Source: Selaginella moellendorffii
Taxonomy: Eukaryota > Plantae > Lycopodiophyta
DNA: 64,000 bases
NCBI RefSeq assembly: GCF_000143415.4
Contig: NW_003314280.1
Span: forward strand, 1,426,894 to 1,490,893
Direction of reading: 5' to 3'
A program made the translations under genes and the position numbers. The notes under the pieces are model-generated. The model made no database searches. It was not told where the DNA came from and worked only from the letters and a program-made list of their open reading frames with translations. Within the stretch, counting starts at the first letter, position 1. The number at the start of each line of letters is the position of its first letter. Below, piece by piece: positions 40,130-49,761 of this stretch.

Positions 40130-41550
40130 ATGGTCGGCTTCGTCGTCGAGTATGCGAAATCCGGTAGGTCGGCGTGCAAGCACTGCAAGCTCGAGCTCGC
40201 CAAGGGCGAGGTGAGAATCGGCATTGTGAGCAAGGGCGCCGGATTCGCCATGACCAAATGGTAAAGATTTTCCATTCCTTTATAGCAATTTCTTTGTTTT
40301 CTTCTTCTTGTGGAAGGCATCACTCCAAATGCGTTTTGGAGCTCCAAGCTCCTGTCGCGGACGTTCTCAAGGCCAAAGGCTTCGCTGCATTGAAAGTAAT
40401 TTTATTTTTTCACAGAATGCGATGAGCCATGAGAACTTTTTGATTTGGTACAGGCTTCGGATCAAACTATTTTGAGGGAGTTGCTACAGCGAGAAACCGT
40501 GGAAGTGAGCCGTAAAAAGATTTGTCTCGAGAAGAAAGCTGTCGTGCCGGAGGAAACTCGACTGCTTTGGCATGCAAAGTTGTCCAGCTTTGAGCCATCT
40601 CAGTTCTCTACATGCTACAAGGTTTGTGTTTTGCATTTAACGCTTTTGATTATATTCATCTCTCAAGACGCATAGGATTCATCTCTGCCCATGGGGTGGA
40701 AGTCATTTTCCTCCATAATCGTGAACACTGTAAGGTTTCTCTTACGAGAACACACGGGATCAAGCTGAGACAGTACTTTTACTCGATTTGCAGCCAGATG
40801 ATAGTGGAACTTTGTCAGAGAAGGTTGCAGCTTTCGACTTTGACGGTTGCCTTGTGAACACTGACGTGAAAAGGTGATATAAATCGCAGCTAGAATCTTT
40901 CCTAATCAACTCTCTTTTGCAGAGTGGGTGCTCAAGCATGGTCCCTACTATACACTTCTATACCGCAAAAGCTACAAGCCTGCCACGAAGACGGGTATAA
41001 ACTGGTGAAGTGCTTGCTGATTGCTTTCACTATGCGGCCTGTTGTCAAACTGTTCTTTTTCTTGTCAGGTGGTGTTTACAAACGAGTCCAACATCGATAG
41101 GTGGACAAAGAGCCGGCAGAAGGCCATCGATTCGAAGCTGGGAAGGCTGAACGCGTTCATGGATCTTGTCAAGGTTCCGATACAGGTATTGTTGTTCCGA
41201 TAAAAAACCACATTTTGACAGTGTTGCTCGCGTTTCTAGGTGGTCATTTCGTGTGGCCTGGACGGTGACCCGTGTAGAAAGCCTGCGCCTGGCATGTGGG
41301 AGTTTATGGAGCGGCACTTGAACGGCGACATCGCCATAGACAGGAGCATGTCTTTCTATGTTGGTGACGCGGCTGGAAGAGCAGGAGATCACAGTGATGC
41401 TGACATTGGATTTGCAAAGGTGAGAGATTGGCCATACATTCCAACTAATGCATTCCAGTCCTCCTTCCGCTTGCACAGGCAGTCGGGCTCAAGTTTTTCG
41501 TACCCGAAGATTATTTCGACGTAAAGCAGAAAACATCTTTGATCGATTGA
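40130..41550 (+). CDS. ZDP: Polynucleotide 3'-phosphatase ZDP (one PARP-type zinc finger plus HAD phosphatase); multi-exon
   Basis: VEYAKSGRSACKHC...WHH.KC zinc finger, then AFDFDGCL, VFTNESNIDRW, RKPAPGMW and FYVGDAAGR..DHSDADI.FA. Exons join in frame with GT-AG introns. Confidence 0.9.
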
Positions 41551-41627
41551 GTGAAAGGATTGTTCCAGTTACCTTGTCACAAGCTTTCGTAACGGTCATT
41601 GGACTTCAATCGCTTCGGTTGTACATT

Positions 41628-41876
41628 TCTAGGTTACAATGGTGCTTTCGTCGACGTTCATTCGTTCTTGGGTTTCTTCGTCAACCTTCACTGCGTCCTC
41701 GTACTTTATTTCTTCCCATGAACAGGCACCGACGGACAGTTCTCCAGCTCTGTGGCATCAAACTATACCATCAGCAATGCGATAGAGAGATGGTTTCTGA
41801 GGTGGCTCTTTATCATCGTCTTTGTCGTCGAGAAGTTGAAGCAGCAAGGGGAAGTGTGGGATGGAAGGAAAACCCT
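41628..41876 (-). pseudogene. 3' remnant of the duplicated TCAB1 gene
   Basis: Near-identical to 47748-48050 but with several internal deletions. Confidence 0.8.
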
Positions 41877-43389: not shown

Positions 43390-44440
43390 TCCTGTGGAGA
43401 TTTCTGCCGTACTTAGAGAACTGAACATGTTTGACTTAGCAGCTTATAGATAGACTCAAGCGAGGAACTATGCTTGAGTGAGGCCTCCCTCGTGTCCTTG
43501 CAGCACATATAGAAGCTCCATGTTGCCTTCGTTGTACACTGCTATGGTTCGATCGTAAGAACCAGCCGCAAGAAGATTTGTTTGGTGTCCGCTAAAAGCT
43601 AGGCACGACACAATTCCTGCAAGAGGCCCGTGACCGTCGAAAGACGATCACCCTTCTTTGGAACTCGTTGGCAGTGACGACCGGGATTTGGGGCATCAAA
43701 AATTCTAATCTTTTGTTGTATCCACAAAACAGCCTACGAGCGCCATGGGCAACCATATCAGAAATCTTCTACCTGTTACCCACAGGATTAAAAGCGACTG
43801 ACAATGCTGCTGAAACTTCAATTGTAAGTTCTATAATGAACTGGATGATCCTGCGTTGTAGTCATGAAGACACAAGTTGACAGATTTACAAGAAATCAAA
43901 AGCCTTACTGAAATTCAAGTGCAAGAGATTAAAACGAAGAACCTGTGGCGACCATGTGAGGACCAGCAAAAATCCACAGGCTCTCCTTCAATGACATAAA
44001 CTCAAGCCCATAACTTTCATGATCCAGGAAAAAATCTAGAATCATACCCGAGCAAGATCATCCAATGCCTCAACTTCCAGAGTGTTTGGAGGCCTGAAGC
44101 CACAAATGTTCCATCAAAACAACCCCACGAAGAGAAGAACAAGGAAGAAAAAACCACAAAACCTAGTGGACTTACAGATTGAAAATCCTGAGCCTCTTGT
44201 CCTCGTTGCACGTCAGAAAGCAGACCTGCAAGAGAATGCCATAGAAATTGCATAGAACAAGCTATAGGTCCAGTACATAGAAACGCAATGGAAACTTTTT
44301 TTCTTTTCTTTCTCACCACTTGACAACCTTGAAGAAATTGTTGCCGCTGCCATCCAGCCGGAACTGACGATGCAAGTGATAGAGTCTCTGCGGCGGAGAA
44401 TCGAAATGCACGCGAGGGCACCACAGATACGAATGCAGCG
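43390..44440 (-). pseudogene. 5'/middle remnant of the duplicated TCAB1 gene
   Basis: Colinear with ~48490-49735 but has many short deletions and frameshifts and has lost the start region. Confidence 0.85.
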
Positions 44441-44467
44441 CTGGCAAATTTTGGGCACACTTATCAA

Positions 44468-45190
44468 TCACACATCGATGATCTGGAGCTCCTTGCTGCT
44501 GCTCATGGACGATCCATCACAACTGGGGCACTGGATCTTCCCCTGCCCCTTGCACGCCCGGCATTTGGGCCCCGAATTCCGCTCCTTGAGGTCGGAGAAC
44601 TCGGATCGCTGGAGCCACCCCATGCTCCAAAGCTTGCGATCCTGGAAATTTGGGAGAAGATAAAAAAAAAACCAAGAATTCGATGGAGAAATCCTATTCT
44701 TACCCGGAGATTTTGCGCATTCACCCACAGCTGGGTGGTGGTGTCACAAGTGGCCACCATTTGGACGAACCATTCCTTGTCGCTCATCCGCTGCTTGGCT
44801 CGAGCTTCGTAGTGGCGCCATCCAAAAGTGCGCTCCATGGCTGTCCATTTGGATCCTGGAGACTCGAGAGAAAGATTGGGAACAAGATCGATCACTCCCC
44901 AATTCACTCACCAACAACGCGGGCCATGTCGACGGGATTTTTGCGGTGGTATCCTCCCAACGCGAGCGTGCCTCGGCCATCGCATTGCTCGCATGCCATC
45001 TCTCCATAGCCTAGAAGTCTCGGTTTTGAAGGTGAACTGGCCGGAAAGAATTCATACCTTTGCAACATCGGCAGGGGAGTGGAGGATACGCATCACTGAG
45101 CGGTTTCACAAATTGCGAGCAAGATTTTTGGTTGCTGCTGCTACAGGACCTGATAGGAACAAGCGACCAGCAGGACTTCAAGCTCTTCAT
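44468..45190 (-). CDS. DnaJ-type zinc-finger protein with inserted TIGR02450/DUF2389-like Trp-rich domain; 4 exons, ~185 aa, putative plastid transit peptide
   Basis: Exons 45190-45058, 45010-44912, 44855-44704 and 44641-44468 (GT-AG introns of 47, 56 and 62 nt) splice into one frame. Motifs CRCCKGYG and CEQCDGRG, then GSKWTAMERTFGWRHY...VQMVATCD....WVNAQNLRDRKLWSMGW, then CRACKGQG and CPSCDG. Confidence 0.85.
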
Positions 45191-45299
45191 CAGAAGTCCT
45201 GATATTTTTCTCTGTATATGGTATAATCGTGAGCAAGTGTTTTAGCGTGCTTCTACACCACAATTCTCAAAACACTAACACAATGTAACAAATGAGAAG

Positions 45300-47110
45300 G
45301 CCTTCCAAAAAACAACAATCTCATAAAACTAGACGGTCATGCACATTTGGGTACTGTTTCCGAGCAGGATCCGGCACTCGTTTTTCAGCCATGCCCTGGC
45401 TCTGCCCGGTCGTTTCTTGGCCTCTTTCAAAGAGTTTCCTCTTTTCTTGGGGAAGGGTTTTCAGACTAGCTTGATAGCCCCATTGGCACATGAGACGCTC
45501 TGTTTTCCTTTGTTCCACTTCTACCTTCTCAGGTTGCCCAGCTTCTTAAGAATGTTGATTTCATCCTGTTCAAGGTTGGTAAGGCACTGGTTCAGCTCAA
45601 GCTCATGCGTCGTGTACGCTACCTTCCCTTCCTCTGTACTGTGTGAAACAGTTGCGCGGCTGGGCAGATGTACACACAGTGCACCCCAGTATGCCAGCGT
45701 TGAATCTCTTCTTGCGTCACAAACTTGTACTCTGTCTTCCTGTGTGTTTCTGGACGAACAGTCACCTGCAGTGCAAGTTTACCCACGCTAGCACGCCATC
45801 CACATACTTGAACGAGTACTTCCCGGGCAACATGTATATTGCCTGGTGCGGCTTCCATTGATATGGCCTGATCACTGCTGGTTCAGCCTCCAGCTTGAAC
45901 ACTTCGATTTGTTCCCCTTGGAAGTTCAACCCGATAGCCTACATAGCCTCTCCGAGAAATCGCAAGCCCACCCCACTTCCGGCCAAATCGCGTTGATTTT
46001 CTTGAGTTTGTGCACTTGTACTCTGGTGAGCGATAGACTGTGCCCTTCAAGCGCTCTAAACCAGCTTCTGCATGTACTGCATGGAGATAGTTGGTGCAAA
46101 AGGATCCATTGCGAACATAGCCCTTCAACACAGATGCGGGATCTCTACCTCCCCTGCATACCTGTACTTGATGTAGTCTCGGATGGATTCAAAGGGCTCA
46201 GCTGGCCTGAAGTTAAGCAGGACCATTTCCCAGTCTCTCTTTTCGTCCAGGTACCTCTCCAAGCTTAGTTCGGCCGCGGAGACCTTGTTCATCTCCCGTA
46301 TCCAGGTTCTGAAAACGTCTCTTGTAGACGACTGGCGGTGTGATGCCTTCGATGTACTCTTTACAGGCCTAGTCTAGGAAGAACAGGGACATTGGGTGCT
46401 TGTCATCATAAAGCATAACATCCGCTTCACGTTCAGGATGCTCTTGAAGCATTGTGCCGAGGAGGGTCTGTTGCAGAAATGAAGCATACTCGTTCTGCAC
46501 ATAAAATTTAGTAAGCGAAGTATGGCAGGAGAACTATTACCTGGCCAAAGACGACATCCCTCAGCTCATACCGGGCTTAGTTCGGCTGCGGAGTCTTGTT
46601 CATCTCCCGTATCCAGGTTCTGGAAACGTCTCTTGTAGACGACTGGCGGTGTGATGCCTTCGATGTGCTCTTTACAGGCCTTATCTAGGAAGAACAGGGA
46701 CAATGGGTGCTTGTCAGCATAAAGAGTAACATCCGCTTCACGTTCAGGAAGGATGCTGTTGAAGCATCTTGCCGAGGAGGGTCTCTTGCAGGAATGCAGT
46801 ATACTCGTTCTGCACATATAAGCGAAGTATGGCAGGAGAACTAATACACGACATCCCTTGGGATGTCCTGCGCATCAACAGCTTCAAGCGACAAGGCCTT
46901 AACGACAAAGTCAGAGTAGCGCTCGAGGGCAGTCATCGGAGTGCGTTCTGAACGATCCCGGCGCAATGCATCTAACTTCTCTTGGCCATCGCAAAGCACA
47001 GTAATGTAATCCCCGGCCGCTCTCCTGTCCAACAAGAATTCGGCAAGGTCCGCGGGAGAAGAGATGTCACCTGGCGTCGGAGATCCTGCTGAGCATCGAA
47101 GTGCCAGATG
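45300..47110 (-). pseudogene. Decayed copy of an unidentified gene family with an internal tandem duplication
   Basis: Protein-like blocks (YLDEKRDWEMVLLNFR; EIPHLC; LPGKYSFKYVDG) interrupted by stops. Homologous to 51660-52260 on the opposite strand. Confidence 0.6.
46263..46843. repeat. Direct tandem duplication of ~270 bp (46263-46536 and 46575-46843)
   Basis: Both units start GCTTAGTTCGGC.GCGGAG and share TTGTTCATCTCCCGTATCCAGGTTCTG...GCGAAGTATGGCAGGAGAACTA. Confidence 0.9.
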
Positions 47111-47251: not shown

Positions 47252-47680
47252 ACTGTTCTTTTTCTTGTCAGGTGGTGGGAAGGCTGAACGCCTTCATGGA
47301 TCTTGTCAAGGTTCCGATACAGGTATTGTTGTTCCGAGAAAAAACCACGTTTTGACAGTGTTGCTCGCGTTTCTAGGTGGTCATTTCGTGTGGCTTGGAC
47401 GGTGATCCGTGTAGAAAGCCTGCGCCTGGCATGTGGGAGTTTATGGAGCGGCACTTGAACGGCGACATCGCCATAGACAGGATCACATCTTTCTATGTTG
47501 GTGACGCGGCTGGAAGAGCAGGAGATCACAGTGATGCTGACATTAGATTTGCAAAAGTGAGATACATTCCAAGTAATGCATTCCAGTCCTCCTTCCGTTC
47601 GCACAGGCAGTCGGGCTCAAGTTTTTCGTACCCGAAGATTATTTCGACGTAAAGCAAAACACATCTTTGATCGATTGAGG
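47252..47680 (+). pseudogene. 3' fragment of the duplicated ZDP gene
   Basis: Near-identical to 41049-41550. It lacks the zinc finger and DxD motif and carries a ~65 bp deletion in the FTNESN exon. Confidence 0.88.
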
Positions 47681-47747
47681 GAAAGGATTGTTCCAGTTAC
47701 CTTGTCACAAGCTTTCGTAACGGTCACTGGACTTCAATCGCTTCGTT

Positions 47748-49761
47748 CTAGGTTACAATGGTGCTTTCGTCAACGTTCATTCGTTCGTGGGTTTCTTCGT
47801 CAACCTTTACTGCGTCCTCGTACTTTATTTCTTCCCATGAACAGGAGAATCTCCACACCGACGCACAGTTCTCCAGCTCTGTGGCATCAAACTATACCAT
47901 CAGCAATGCGACTGAGAGATGGTTTTGGAAGTAATTGCCTGTTAGAATCTGCGGTGGCTCTTCGTCATCGTCTTTGTCCTCGCTAGTGCTAAACCTCCGA
48001 GCGCCAGAAGTTGAAGCAGCCAGGGGAAGCGTGGGATGGAAGGAAAACCCATTGATGGTATCTGATTGTAAGCGAAAGTGAGGGAAAGAATAGAATTTTT
48101 TGGTTTTGTACCTGAGGCTGCGTGAATGCTGGCAGTGAATTCACCAGTTCGAAGATCATAGAAACGAATATCACCGTCCTGCTTGGTTGCACCTAGTGAG
48201 CACTGAATAAAAAAGAAGAAGATAACTCAACCTCGCCTCCTGTGCCGAGGTGTTGAGCATATGGTTCAATGTCAAACGCTATCCTCTGGTTCGTGTTAGT
48301 AACAGCTCTTTCAAGCCTGCGCAAAAAGCACAAGCTAAGTAATCTAGCGACTAGAAAATTCAGTTGAGGCATACTTGTACACTAAACTCGTTGTATACCG
48401 AACGTCCCAGCAGCATATCGATGGATCCTGGATCGAAGCACCATAATGAGGATAGCCAACAGAAGAAGAGACTTTGAGACCTTTCGAGCCCCGCTGTACA
48501 GATAGTTGCCGTCCTTGGAGAACTGAACCTGTTCGAGAAACGAGCTTAGCAGCGCATAGATAGACTCGAGAGGAAAGAGAAGAACTATACTTGAGTCAGG
48601 CCTCCTTCGTGTCCTTGCAGCACATATAGAAGCTCCATGTTACCTTCGTTGTACACTGCTATGGTTCGATCGTAAGAACCAGCCGCAAGAAGATTTGTCT
48701 GGTGTCCGCTAAAAGCTAGGCACGACACAATTCCTGCAAGAGGCCCGTGACTACTTTTGTTACTATAGTCGAAAGACGATCACCTGTAATGCCTTCTTTG
48801 GAACTCGTGAGTGTAGAGTGCTCTTCGCAGTGACGACCGGGAGTTGAGGTATCGAAAATTCTGATCTTTCTTTTGTATCCACAAAAGAGCCTGCGAGCGC
48901 CTAATGGTCAGGCATGGGCAACCATATCAGAAATATTCTACCTGTTACCCGCAGGATTAAAAGCGACTGACAATGCTGCTGTAACTTCATCCATGGCATT
49001 GTAAGCTCTATAGCTGCAGCGGAGCTACAGACAGGTAAAAACACCAAATCTATACTCTGCTAGACGCAAAACTTCAAGCTTACATTACCAGTAGCAGCAT
49101 CCCACAGATGAACTGGATGATCCCGAGTTGTAGTCGCGAAAACACAAGTTGACAGATCTACAAGCAATCAAAAGCCTTAGTAAACAGCAAGCGCAAGAGA
49201 TTAAGACGAAGAACCTGTGGCGACCATGTGAGGATACCAGCAAAAATCGTACACAGTCTCTCCTTCCGACACCGTCAATGACGAGACAAGTGGATCTAGA
49301 ATCAAGCCGATAACTTTCATGATCCAGGAAAATTCTAGAATCATACCCGTCTTGGCAGCAAGATCATCCAATGCTTCGACTTCCAGAGCGTTTGACGGCC
49401 TGGAGCCACAAGTGTTACATAAAAAAACGACCCCACAAAGAGAAGAACAAGGAAAAAACAGCACAAAACTGGACTTACAAATCGAAAATCCTGAGCGTCT
49501 TGTCCTCGTTGCACGTCAGAAAGCAGGAGCCATCAGGAGACCTGCAAGAGAATGCAATAGAAATAGCGTAGAACGAGCTATAGAACATAGAAATGCAATG
49601 AGAACTTCTTCTCACCACTTGACACCCTTGAAGAAATTGTTGCCGCTGCCATCCAGCCGGAACTGGCGATGCAAGTGATAGAGCCTCTGCGGCGGAGGAT
49701 CGAAATGCACGCGAGGGCACCACAGATACGAATTCGGTGCTGGCGCCTTCTCTTCTTCCAT
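47748..49761 (-). CDS. TCAB1: Telomerase Cajal body protein 1 (WRAP53/WDR79), WD40; multi-exon
   Basis: NNFFKGVKW|SPDGSCFLT.NEDKTLRIF, EGETVYDFCWYP.M, TTRDHPVHLWDA, YRAYNAMDE and NGFSFHP.LPLAAS.SG.RRF. The last exon is ENCASVWRFS...*. Confidence 0.88.

Follow-up and report, generated by a model that had tools for sequence, protein, structure and literature searches.

We examined a gene on the minus strand of a 64,000-nucleotide stretch of the Selaginella moellendorffii genome (contig NW_003314280.1, positions 1,426,894 to 1,490,893), which in the following is called the window and is numbered from its first letter. The gene encodes a small protein in which a DnaJ/BSD2-type zinc finger is interrupted by a second domain, DUF2389 (TIGR02450), which in cyanobacteria occurs as a stand-alone protein. 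An earlier prediction, made from the letters of the window alone, had described the locus as a hidden chimera of these two parts. Here we describe the gene and its transcripts, the composition and predicted fold of its product, the distribution of its relatives and the role that the protein might play.

Gene structure and transcripts

Reading the minus strand between 44300 and 45400 and translating the pieces yielded a gene of four exons that runs from 45190 to 44468 and specifies a product of 185 amino acids (aa). Upstream of the ATG at 45190 an in-frame stop codon is found at 45244-45242, with no further ATG in between. The features of the locus are:

45191..45258, minus strand: 5' untranslated region (UTR), minimum extent; transcript contigs extend to 45258 and 45233
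45058..45190, minus strand: exon 1, comprising the start codon ATG, an N-terminal extension rich in Ser, the conserved FVKPL motif and the first part of finger motif 1 (C40, C43)
45011..45057, minus strand: intron 1, 47 nt, GT-AG, phase 1, interrupting motif 1; spliced out in the contigs of 4 runs
44912..45010, minus strand: exon 2, with the end of motif 1, motif 2 (C51, C54) and the linker GGY..NPV...R.VG
44856..44911, minus strand: intron 2, 56 nt, GT-AG, phase 1, located precisely where the DUF2389 match starts on its N-terminal side
44704..44855, minus strand: exon 3, with DUF2389 residues 79-128 (GSKWT, GWRHY, the CD dyad, W.N)
44642..44703, minus strand: intron 3, 62 nt, GT-AG, phase 0, inside the DUF2389 domain; seen in transcript contigs
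44468..44641, minus strand: exon 4, with the end of DUF2389 (W133, G136, W137), helix 140-148, motifs 3 and 4, the tail and the stop codon
44615..44853, minus strand: DUF2389/TIGR02450 domain, residues 79-137, intron 3 included; Pfam 65.7 bits
44513-44563, minus strand: motifs 3 and 4 (C155, C158, C166, C169), within exon 4
44471-44488, minus strand: conserved C-terminal tail LQIIDV, within exon 4
44468-44470, minus strand: stop codon, included in exon 4
44315..44467, minus strand: 3' UTR, by transcript contig coverage

Parts of the stretch are contained in 20 public runs. For four runs, each from a different study, transcript contigs were aligned to the region 44200-45500. The assignment of the runs to RNA is a guess; the contigs themselves are attributed to RNA, because spliced forms with GT-AG ends have no other source. 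The introns at 44642-44703 and 45011-45057 were skipped in the contigs of all four runs. The intron at 44856-44911 was skipped exactly in one run, and the other three share this junction together with a synonymous A>G exchange at 44913. Towards the 5' side the contigs reach 45258 and towards the 3' side 44315. Two runs carry an A>C allele at 44979, which corresponds to D55E and turns the CDGRG of motif 2 into CEGRG. The gene is real, expressed and nuclear in S. moellendorffii.

The spliced product is identical, letter for letter, to the RefSeq protein XP_024533097.1 of S. moellendorffii (P0234, LOC112347072). RefSeq thus already models the gene exactly, under the label 'uncharacterized protein'. 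A second Selaginella locus on another scaffold (XP_024532659.1, P0001, LOC112346931) differs by K5R and D55E, the latter being the exchange seen in the two runs, and is probably the other haplotype.

Downstream of the coding sequence, the contigs of three runs connect 44222/44223 with 44315 via 13-14 other letters, and the contig of one run continues for about 2.1 kb further left beyond 44222. The join between 44222 and 44315 could be a haplotype indel in the 3' UTR, or a neighbouring transcript that overlaps.

Domain composition

The whole protein matched the Pfam profile of DUF2389 with 65.7 bits (cut-off 25, E 5.7e-18) over residues 79-137, corresponding to positions 1-60 of the 61 in the profile. 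Exon 3 alone gave 51.2 bits against the same profile (cut-off 25, E 1.8e-13) and 39.3 bits with NCBIfam TIGR02450, above the cut-off of 36.85. TIGR02450 is of the 'hypoth_equivalog' type and describes a small stand-alone protein; here the domain is embedded between CxxC pairs of a protein of 185 aa. The Selaginella protein is a DUF2389 member at the level of the domain and no equivalog of the stand-alone proteins.

The Trp-rich signature of the domain (GSKWT, GWRH[FY], CD, W.N and W..GW) is present; in alignments that include cyanobacterial members, each of its columns is either invariant or conserved to 90% or more. In a set of 104 domains from plants and cyanobacteria, W81, T82, G89, C114, W133, G136 and W137 (Selaginella numbering) are invariant, and G78, S79, W90, R91, H92, F/Y93, D115 and W121 are conserved to at least 90%. 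The domain, for which a barrel fold is predicted below, contains a Cys that never varies, a His and an Asp that are nearly invariant, and Trp at five conserved positions.

The zinc finger that surrounds the domain contains four motifs: CRCCKGYG (motif 1), CEQCDGRG (motif 2), CRACKGQG (motif 3) and CPSCDGSS (motif 4). Seven of its cysteines (C40, C43, C51, C54, C155, C158 and C166) are at least 90% conserved in 146 sequences, with C40 and C43 assessed via consensus positions, and C169 is invariant in an alignment of 7 sequences. In the liverworts Riccia, Marchantia and Calypogeia (P0002, P0235, P0020) motif 4 reads PCIC or PCSC; in other lineages it has the form CxxC.

Further elements are conserved outside the two domains. 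A FV[KR]P[LI] motif precedes the finger and a linker of the form GGY..NPV...R[IV][IV]G precedes the barrel. The C-terminus is conserved as well, being of LDIIEV-type in streptophytes and of GQVVEL-type in chlorophytes. Ahead of the first motif lie N-terminal extensions of 37-136 aa that are rich in S/T/A/R and mostly contain few acidic residues, with Klebsormidium as an exception.

A Pfam scan of the whole protein with E up to 1 returned no J-domain family. A profile search of solved structures placed BSD2 at the top (9ci1 with E 6.8e-4, 6ekb with E 1.5e-3), followed by EMB2737 and DnaJ; the DUF2389 part had no match in this search.

Predicted structure

An AlphaFold2 model based on 146 homologues had a mean predicted local distance difference test (pLDDT) score of 86 and a predicted template modelling score (pTM) of 0.68; over residues 41-170 the block means exceeded 90. 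In an exhaustive VIA-align search, residues 36..172 of the model aligned with BSD2 (6ekb_A) at Z 5.1 over 54 of 62 residues with 35% identity, and the model also aligned with anti-TRAP (2bx9) at Z 4.8. Both halves of the split finger superpose on 6ekb_A and are therefore modelled jointly as a BSD2-like hairpin. The model was calculated without zinc; a two-zinc hairpin with pairing of motifs 1-4 and 2-3 was assessed by fold alignment. In DnaJ's cysteine-rich domain (PDB 1exk) motifs 1 and 4 form one pair and motifs 2 and 3 the other. Because of this pairing, the segment between motifs 2 and 3 should form the distal tip of the hairpin at the second zinc site (Zn-2). It is the loop at this place that is replaced by about 96 residues, comprising the linker, the DUF2389 domain and a short helix.

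Within the insert, residues 80-135 were modelled as five strands and a short helix, followed by a helix at 140-148. Residues 68-137 matched the N-terminal domain of CarD (4l5g; Z 6.5, root-mean-square deviation (rmsd) 2.1 A, 57 residues), VapX (6zn8; Z 6.3), the C-terminal Tudor domain of UvrD/PcrA (7egs/5dma; Z 5.8) and the Tudor domain of RDM15 (7de9; Z 5.6). For CarD, UvrD/PcrA, RDM15 and VapX, Z was 5.3-6.6 and rmsd 2.1-2.9 A over 51-64 residues. A model of the stand-alone protein from Crocosphaera watsonii (pLDDT 82) gave the same list of matches as the plant barrel; in both models the CarD, UvrD, RDM15 and SMN Tudor-like domains matched at Z 5-6.6. Many of the top matches are RNA polymerase-binding bacterial Tudor-like domains, or KOW and ribosomal barrels. 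With these Tudor/SH3-like proteins the family shares the common five-stranded small barrel; they differ in sequence (identity at most 13%, no links by hidden Markov model (HMM)) and were compared by fold only. DUF2389 is thus predicted to be a five-stranded SH3/Tudor-like small barrel, a fold that by itself implies no function. Foldseek returned nothing from the PDB at E 0.001 or better for either the plant or the Crocosphaera model. A fold search of a protein atlas returned only the cluster of the family itself and one bacterial cluster of 73 aa, and a feature search of the same atlas gave no usable match.

Judged from the model's strand register, H92 and C114 would be expected to lie next to each other across the strands of the hairpin formed by beta2 (90-100) and beta3 (106-112). 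The combination of an invariant thiol with a neighbouring His and Asp would hint at a candidate metal, cofactor or catalytic site. The C-terminal tail had a pLDDT of about 60, as expected for a docking peptide, and the conserved tail may represent a further docking motif.

These results are in agreement with most of what the original prediction had said about the gene itself. Four exons splicing cleanly into about 185 aa were borne out by exact junctions in the contigs and by the identity to XP_024533097.1. The chimeric architecture was recovered by the DUF2389 score and by the TIGR02450 score of exon 3, with all of the quoted motifs present, and the proposed insertion on the distal hairpin between motifs 2 and 3 agrees with the superposition of the two halves on BSD2. 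Calling the chimera hidden was an overstatement: an exact RefSeq model exists, and the precomputed Pfam labels include both PF09493 and PF25436.

Distribution and inheritance of the family

A word search restricted to the domain returned 8 proteins, and a profile built from 7 of these returned 212 proteins, of which the best 120 were examined. An exhaustive HMMER search over 1.84 billion representatives gave 491 matches at E 1e-3 or better, 70 of them at 1e-30 or better. Among the proteins that were fetched and contain the core motif, 93 of 145 flank the domain with two or more CxxC on each side; most of the remainder were fragments or cyanobacterial stand-alone proteins. The same architecture as in Selaginella was present in chlorophytes (Chlorella, Micractinium, Coccomyxa, Trebouxia, Scenedesmus, Volvox, Chlamydomonas incerta, C. 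schloesseri, Picochlorum, Tetraselmis), streptophyte algae (Mesostigma, Chlorokybus, Klebsormidium, Chara, Spirogloea, Mesotaenium, Closterium), liverworts (Marchantia, Riccia, Calypogeia), mosses (Physcomitrium, Ceratodon, Sphagnum), lycophytes (Selaginella, Diphasiastrum), ferns (Ceratopteris, Adiantum), gymnosperms (Ginkgo, Cryptomeria, Welwitschia) and one pelagophyte (Pelagococcus). All names given to these proteins are 'hypothetical' or 'uncharacterized'. The Marchantia member is Mp4g02800 and that of Physcomitrium LOC112279469.

The gene tree of the family broadly tracks the species tree. In addition, Marchantia has introns at all three positions used in Selaginella, and Physcomitrium at those of introns 2 and 3. 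Taken together, the tree and the shared introns indicate vertical inheritance. The sequence comparisons thus describe what appears to be a family vertically inherited across the green lineage, in which a presumably cyanobacterium-derived DUF2389 domain sits in a putative DnaJ/BSD2-type two-zinc hairpin without a J-domain.

Some members deviate in the barrel. In Cryptomeria, isoform X2 (P0060) contains 14 extra barrel residues exactly at the position of Selaginella intron 3, which suggests alternative use of splice sites. The Closterium protein (P0123) has a long low-complexity insert between barrel strands, and the one from Picochlorum (P0116) has extra residues inside the barrel.

No named angiosperm occurred among the best 120 of the 212 profile matches, among the long proteins that were looked up, or in a search with the C. 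incerta protein. The latter search matched Volvox, Gonium and others and returned no named entry of C. reinhardtii. Unnamed sequences (Logan/ENA) grouped inside moss, fern, gymnosperm or algal clades in a tree of the conserved region, and none took an angiosperm position. Angiosperm proteomes are deposited by the hundred in NCBI and UniRef. Because so many are available, the lack of an angiosperm member among the protein matches argues for, and does not prove, loss of the family in flowering plants; the argument applies to the protein databases and the best 120 of the 212 matches. The original prediction had not recognised the protein from angiosperms, in line with this result.

The pelagophyte protein (Pelagococcus subviridis, P0257, 361 aa) consists of the finger-DUF2389-finger core, preceded by a hydrophobic N-terminus and followed by a long basic extension at the C-terminus. 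Its domain falls within the eukaryotic clade, on a long branch. This homologue hints at a spread beyond the green lineage or at an older origin. By eye, its hydrophobic N-terminus could be a signal peptide such as secondary plastids need.

Origin of the inserted domain

The profile derived from eukaryotic sequences also recovered stand-alone DUF2389 proteins of about 70-130 aa, which contain the full signature and no cysteine motifs. A genome scan found stand-alone relatives in at least 591 species genomes, and all named ones among the best 80 were cyanobacteria; the scan was built from cyanobacterial patterns only and is thus biased towards this group. The original prediction had compared the domain to cyanobacterial and proteobacterial proteins. 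Its cyanobacterial half was upheld. For the proteobacterial half no support was obtained, since all named stand-alone relatives that were fetched were cyanobacterial, within the bias just mentioned.

The plant and cyanobacterial proteins are alike in full-length homology of the domain, in the shared signature and in the predicted barrel. They differ in that the plant domain is embedded in a zinc finger and is nuclear-encoded with introns. Identity within the domain was 34-43% to a cyanobacterial reference (P0196) in an alignment of 14 domain sequences, and 36% to Crocosphaera (alignment A5). In an unrooted domain tree of 77 columns the eukaryotic domains, including that of the pelagophyte, were split from the cyanobacterial ones by one branch with a Shimodaira-Hasegawa-like approximate likelihood ratio test (SH-aLRT) value of 97. 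This topology would fit a single transfer of the domain from the cyanobacterial endosymbiont and then, still ahead of the diversification of the green lineage, a single fusion event, without proving either.

Around the cyanobacterial gene, ORF (open reading frame) clusters at 80 loci contained an ABC ATPase in 19 cases, DUF2973 in 17, DUF2605 in 13, a rhomboid protein in 10 and a sigma-70 factor in 8. The small DUF2605 and DUF2973 genes lie downstream of the DUF2389 gene on the same strand at 13-17 of the 80 loci, too rarely for an operon.

Comparison with known zinc-finger proteins

BSD2, a plastid chaperone of Rubisco assembly, resembles the family in several respects, like its algal relative ZnJ2: it is small, lacks a J-domain, contains four CxxCxGxG-type motifs and carries an N-terminal extension. 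It is also the top sequence match among solved structures, and the split finger superposes on it. Unlike in BSD2, the finger of the Selaginella protein is interrupted at the predicted Zn-2 tip by an insert of 96 residues, and its HMM score stays below the gathering cut-off of BSD2_CRD. A Selaginella orthologue of BSD2 was considered as the identity of the protein and rejected, as every relative carries DUF2389. BSD2 is reported to be universal in plants and algae (PMC7217058). Since no angiosperm member of the DUF2389-finger family was found, the latter must be kept separate from BSD2 orthologues.

PSA2, LQY1, CYO1/SCO2, OR and ZnJ6 combine a zinc finger without a J-domain with a part that provides client specificity, and take part in building or repairing plastid complexes (PMC4806229, PMC7865324, PMC5818400). 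In contrast to the present family, none of them is described with DUF2389 or with a domain inside the finger, and all have angiosperm members. The ZnJ family survey (PMC5818400) mentions no inserted domain; one of its unnamed Chlamydomonas entries could be the orthologue. A search of the literature library for the DUF2389 domain, the family accessions and the locus names found no paper, and no characterised orthologue of this architecture came to light in the library. The checks on which the original prediction stood or fell accordingly gave a DUF2389 match, supported splice junctions and no characterised orthologue. The family joins a chaperone-type scaffold of a known kind to an insertion that had not been described, and is uncharacterised yet visible in databases.

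Proposed role

By analogy with BSD2/ZnJ2, PSA2, LQY1 and OR, we propose that the protein is a client-specific holding or assembly factor, or an adaptor, of the plastid with the barrel as its specificity module, a reading to which we assign a probability of about 0.55. The original prediction had likewise suggested a plastid-targeted chaperone; both the targeting and the chaperone activity stay at the level of a proposal. The N-terminal extension would take the protein into the plastid; the S/T/A/R-rich extensions are consistent with transit peptides. There, the zinc hairpin would provide a chaperone surface similar to that of BSD2/ZnJ2, and the Trp-rich barrel would recognise a specific partner or ligand inherited from cyanobacteria. 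ZnJ2 offers a precedent for such a surface: it is a zinc-binding holdase whose activity persists when all cysteines are replaced by serine (PMC5818400).

Several observations weigh against this proposal. In Selaginella, the presequence that leads up to the first conserved motif is short, at about 26 aa. Motif 4 (CPSCDGSS) lacks the last Gly and is degenerate, and in liverworts it is reduced to CxC. BSD2_CRD (PF25436) scored 24.7 bits against the whole protein, below its gathering cut-off of 27, and DnaJ_CXXCXGXG (PF00684) scored 15.4 bits against the exon 4 piece, below 32.7; such low scores for the zinc finger are expected, because the insert splits the domain, but the formal thresholds are missed all the same. 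For the barrel, the structural matches are of a generic kind (Z < 8, in the range of a 'common arrangement') and name no partner, and the 80 cyanobacterial loci revealed neither a conserved operon nor a functional lead.

Alternatively, the barrel itself might carry the conserved activity, such as binding of a metal, a cofactor, nucleic acid, RNA polymerase or the ribosome, with the finger acting as a rigid clasp and not as a chaperone. We regard this as possible, if somewhat doubtful. It would agree with the far stronger conservation of the barrel compared to the finger (one Cys invariant, and a His, an Asp and several Trp conserved to at least 90%, in the 104 plant and cyanobacterial sequences), with the use of DUF2389 alone by cyanobacteria, and with the position of H92 and C114, which from the DSSP strand register should face each other across the beta2-beta3 hairpin. 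The RNA polymerase-binding Tudor-like, KOW and ribosomal barrels among the top fold matches point in the same direction, but their scores are generic (Z at most 6.6) and no link at sequence level to the CarD, KOW or Tudor families was found. Moreover, conservation from chlorophytes to gymnosperms extends to the finger motifs, linker and C-terminal tail, which suggests that these do more than stabilise the barrel.

A narrower version of the plastid role concerns the identity of the client. The dark-operative protochlorophyllide reductase and PsaM have a phyletic pattern that resembles that of the DUF2389-finger family. For the flavodiiron proteins FLVA/FLVB the same pattern as for the family is reported, from cyanobacteria to gymnosperms and not in angiosperms (PMC12344627, PMC11850960). 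The equal pattern suggests, speculatively, a client that angiosperms have lost. The family would then be dedicated to assembling or maintaining a plastid component of cyanobacterial descent that was given up in flowering plants, the barrel being the ancestral partner-binding module and the zinc hairpin a chaperone part added in eukaryotes. We consider this specific version unlikely at present.

A thiol-disulfide oxidoreductase in the manner of LQY1, CYO1/SCO2, ZnJ6 or OR, with the client chosen by the barrel, appears improbable. Several DnaJ-like zinc-finger proteins of plastids are reported to be active as disulfide isomerase, oxidase or reductase (PMC7865324, PMC9225386), and eight finger cysteines plus the invariant Cys of the barrel would be at hand. 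The closest solved relative is, however, BSD2 and not LQY1, and the model reveals no evident transmembrane segment of the LQY1/ZnJ6 type. In addition, the algal BSD2-like protein ZnJ2 showed no oxidoreductase activity and functioned without its cysteines (PMC5818400).

Finally, an annotation or assembly chimera, or a pseudogene of unrelated ORF fragments, as could be suspected from an ORF list that splits the gene across frames, is refuted by the spliced contigs of four studies, the identical RefSeq protein, the same architecture in dozens of species, the conserved intron positions and the confident AlphaFold2 model, and can practically be dismissed.

Duplication of the neighbouring gene

The window contains a tandem segmental duplication in which 41139-41875 corresponds to 47276-48050 and 43392-44445 to 48494-49744, with 79-87% identity. 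The duplicated unit is the gene to the left of the zinc-finger gene and extends up to about 20 nt before the stop codon of the latter. It takes in the 3' UTR of the zinc-finger gene and not its coding sequence. A tandem duplicate of the zinc-finger gene within the window was thereby excluded, the duplication being limited to the neighbouring gene and the 3' UTR. The duplicated ORFs at 41240-41524 and 47377-47652 share a ...FYVGDAAGR..D.S..D..FA motif, which we take to resemble that of HAD-type polynucleotide 3'-phosphatases.

Significance

J-less DnaJ-type zinc-finger proteins such as BSD2, PSA2, LQY1 and OR are key client-specific factors in the biogenesis of Rubisco, the photosystems and carotenoids. 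To our knowledge, the known ones all came from genetics in angiosperms or Chlamydomonas. The family described here is as ancient and as well conserved as BSD2, PSA2, LQY1 and OR, and its apparent absence from angiosperms may explain why no paper on it was found. It is a real, conserved and uncharacterised variant of the plastid J-less zinc-finger proteins. A DnaJ-type finger with a domain grafted into its Zn-2 tip represents an unusual solution in terms of protein engineering. The finger family of the green lineage and the pelagophyte is, moreover, the sole eukaryotic setting found for DUF2389, which cyanobacterial genomes encode by the hundred. Its function can thus be approached from two sides, through a member of the green-lineage family and through the stand-alone gene of cyanobacteria.

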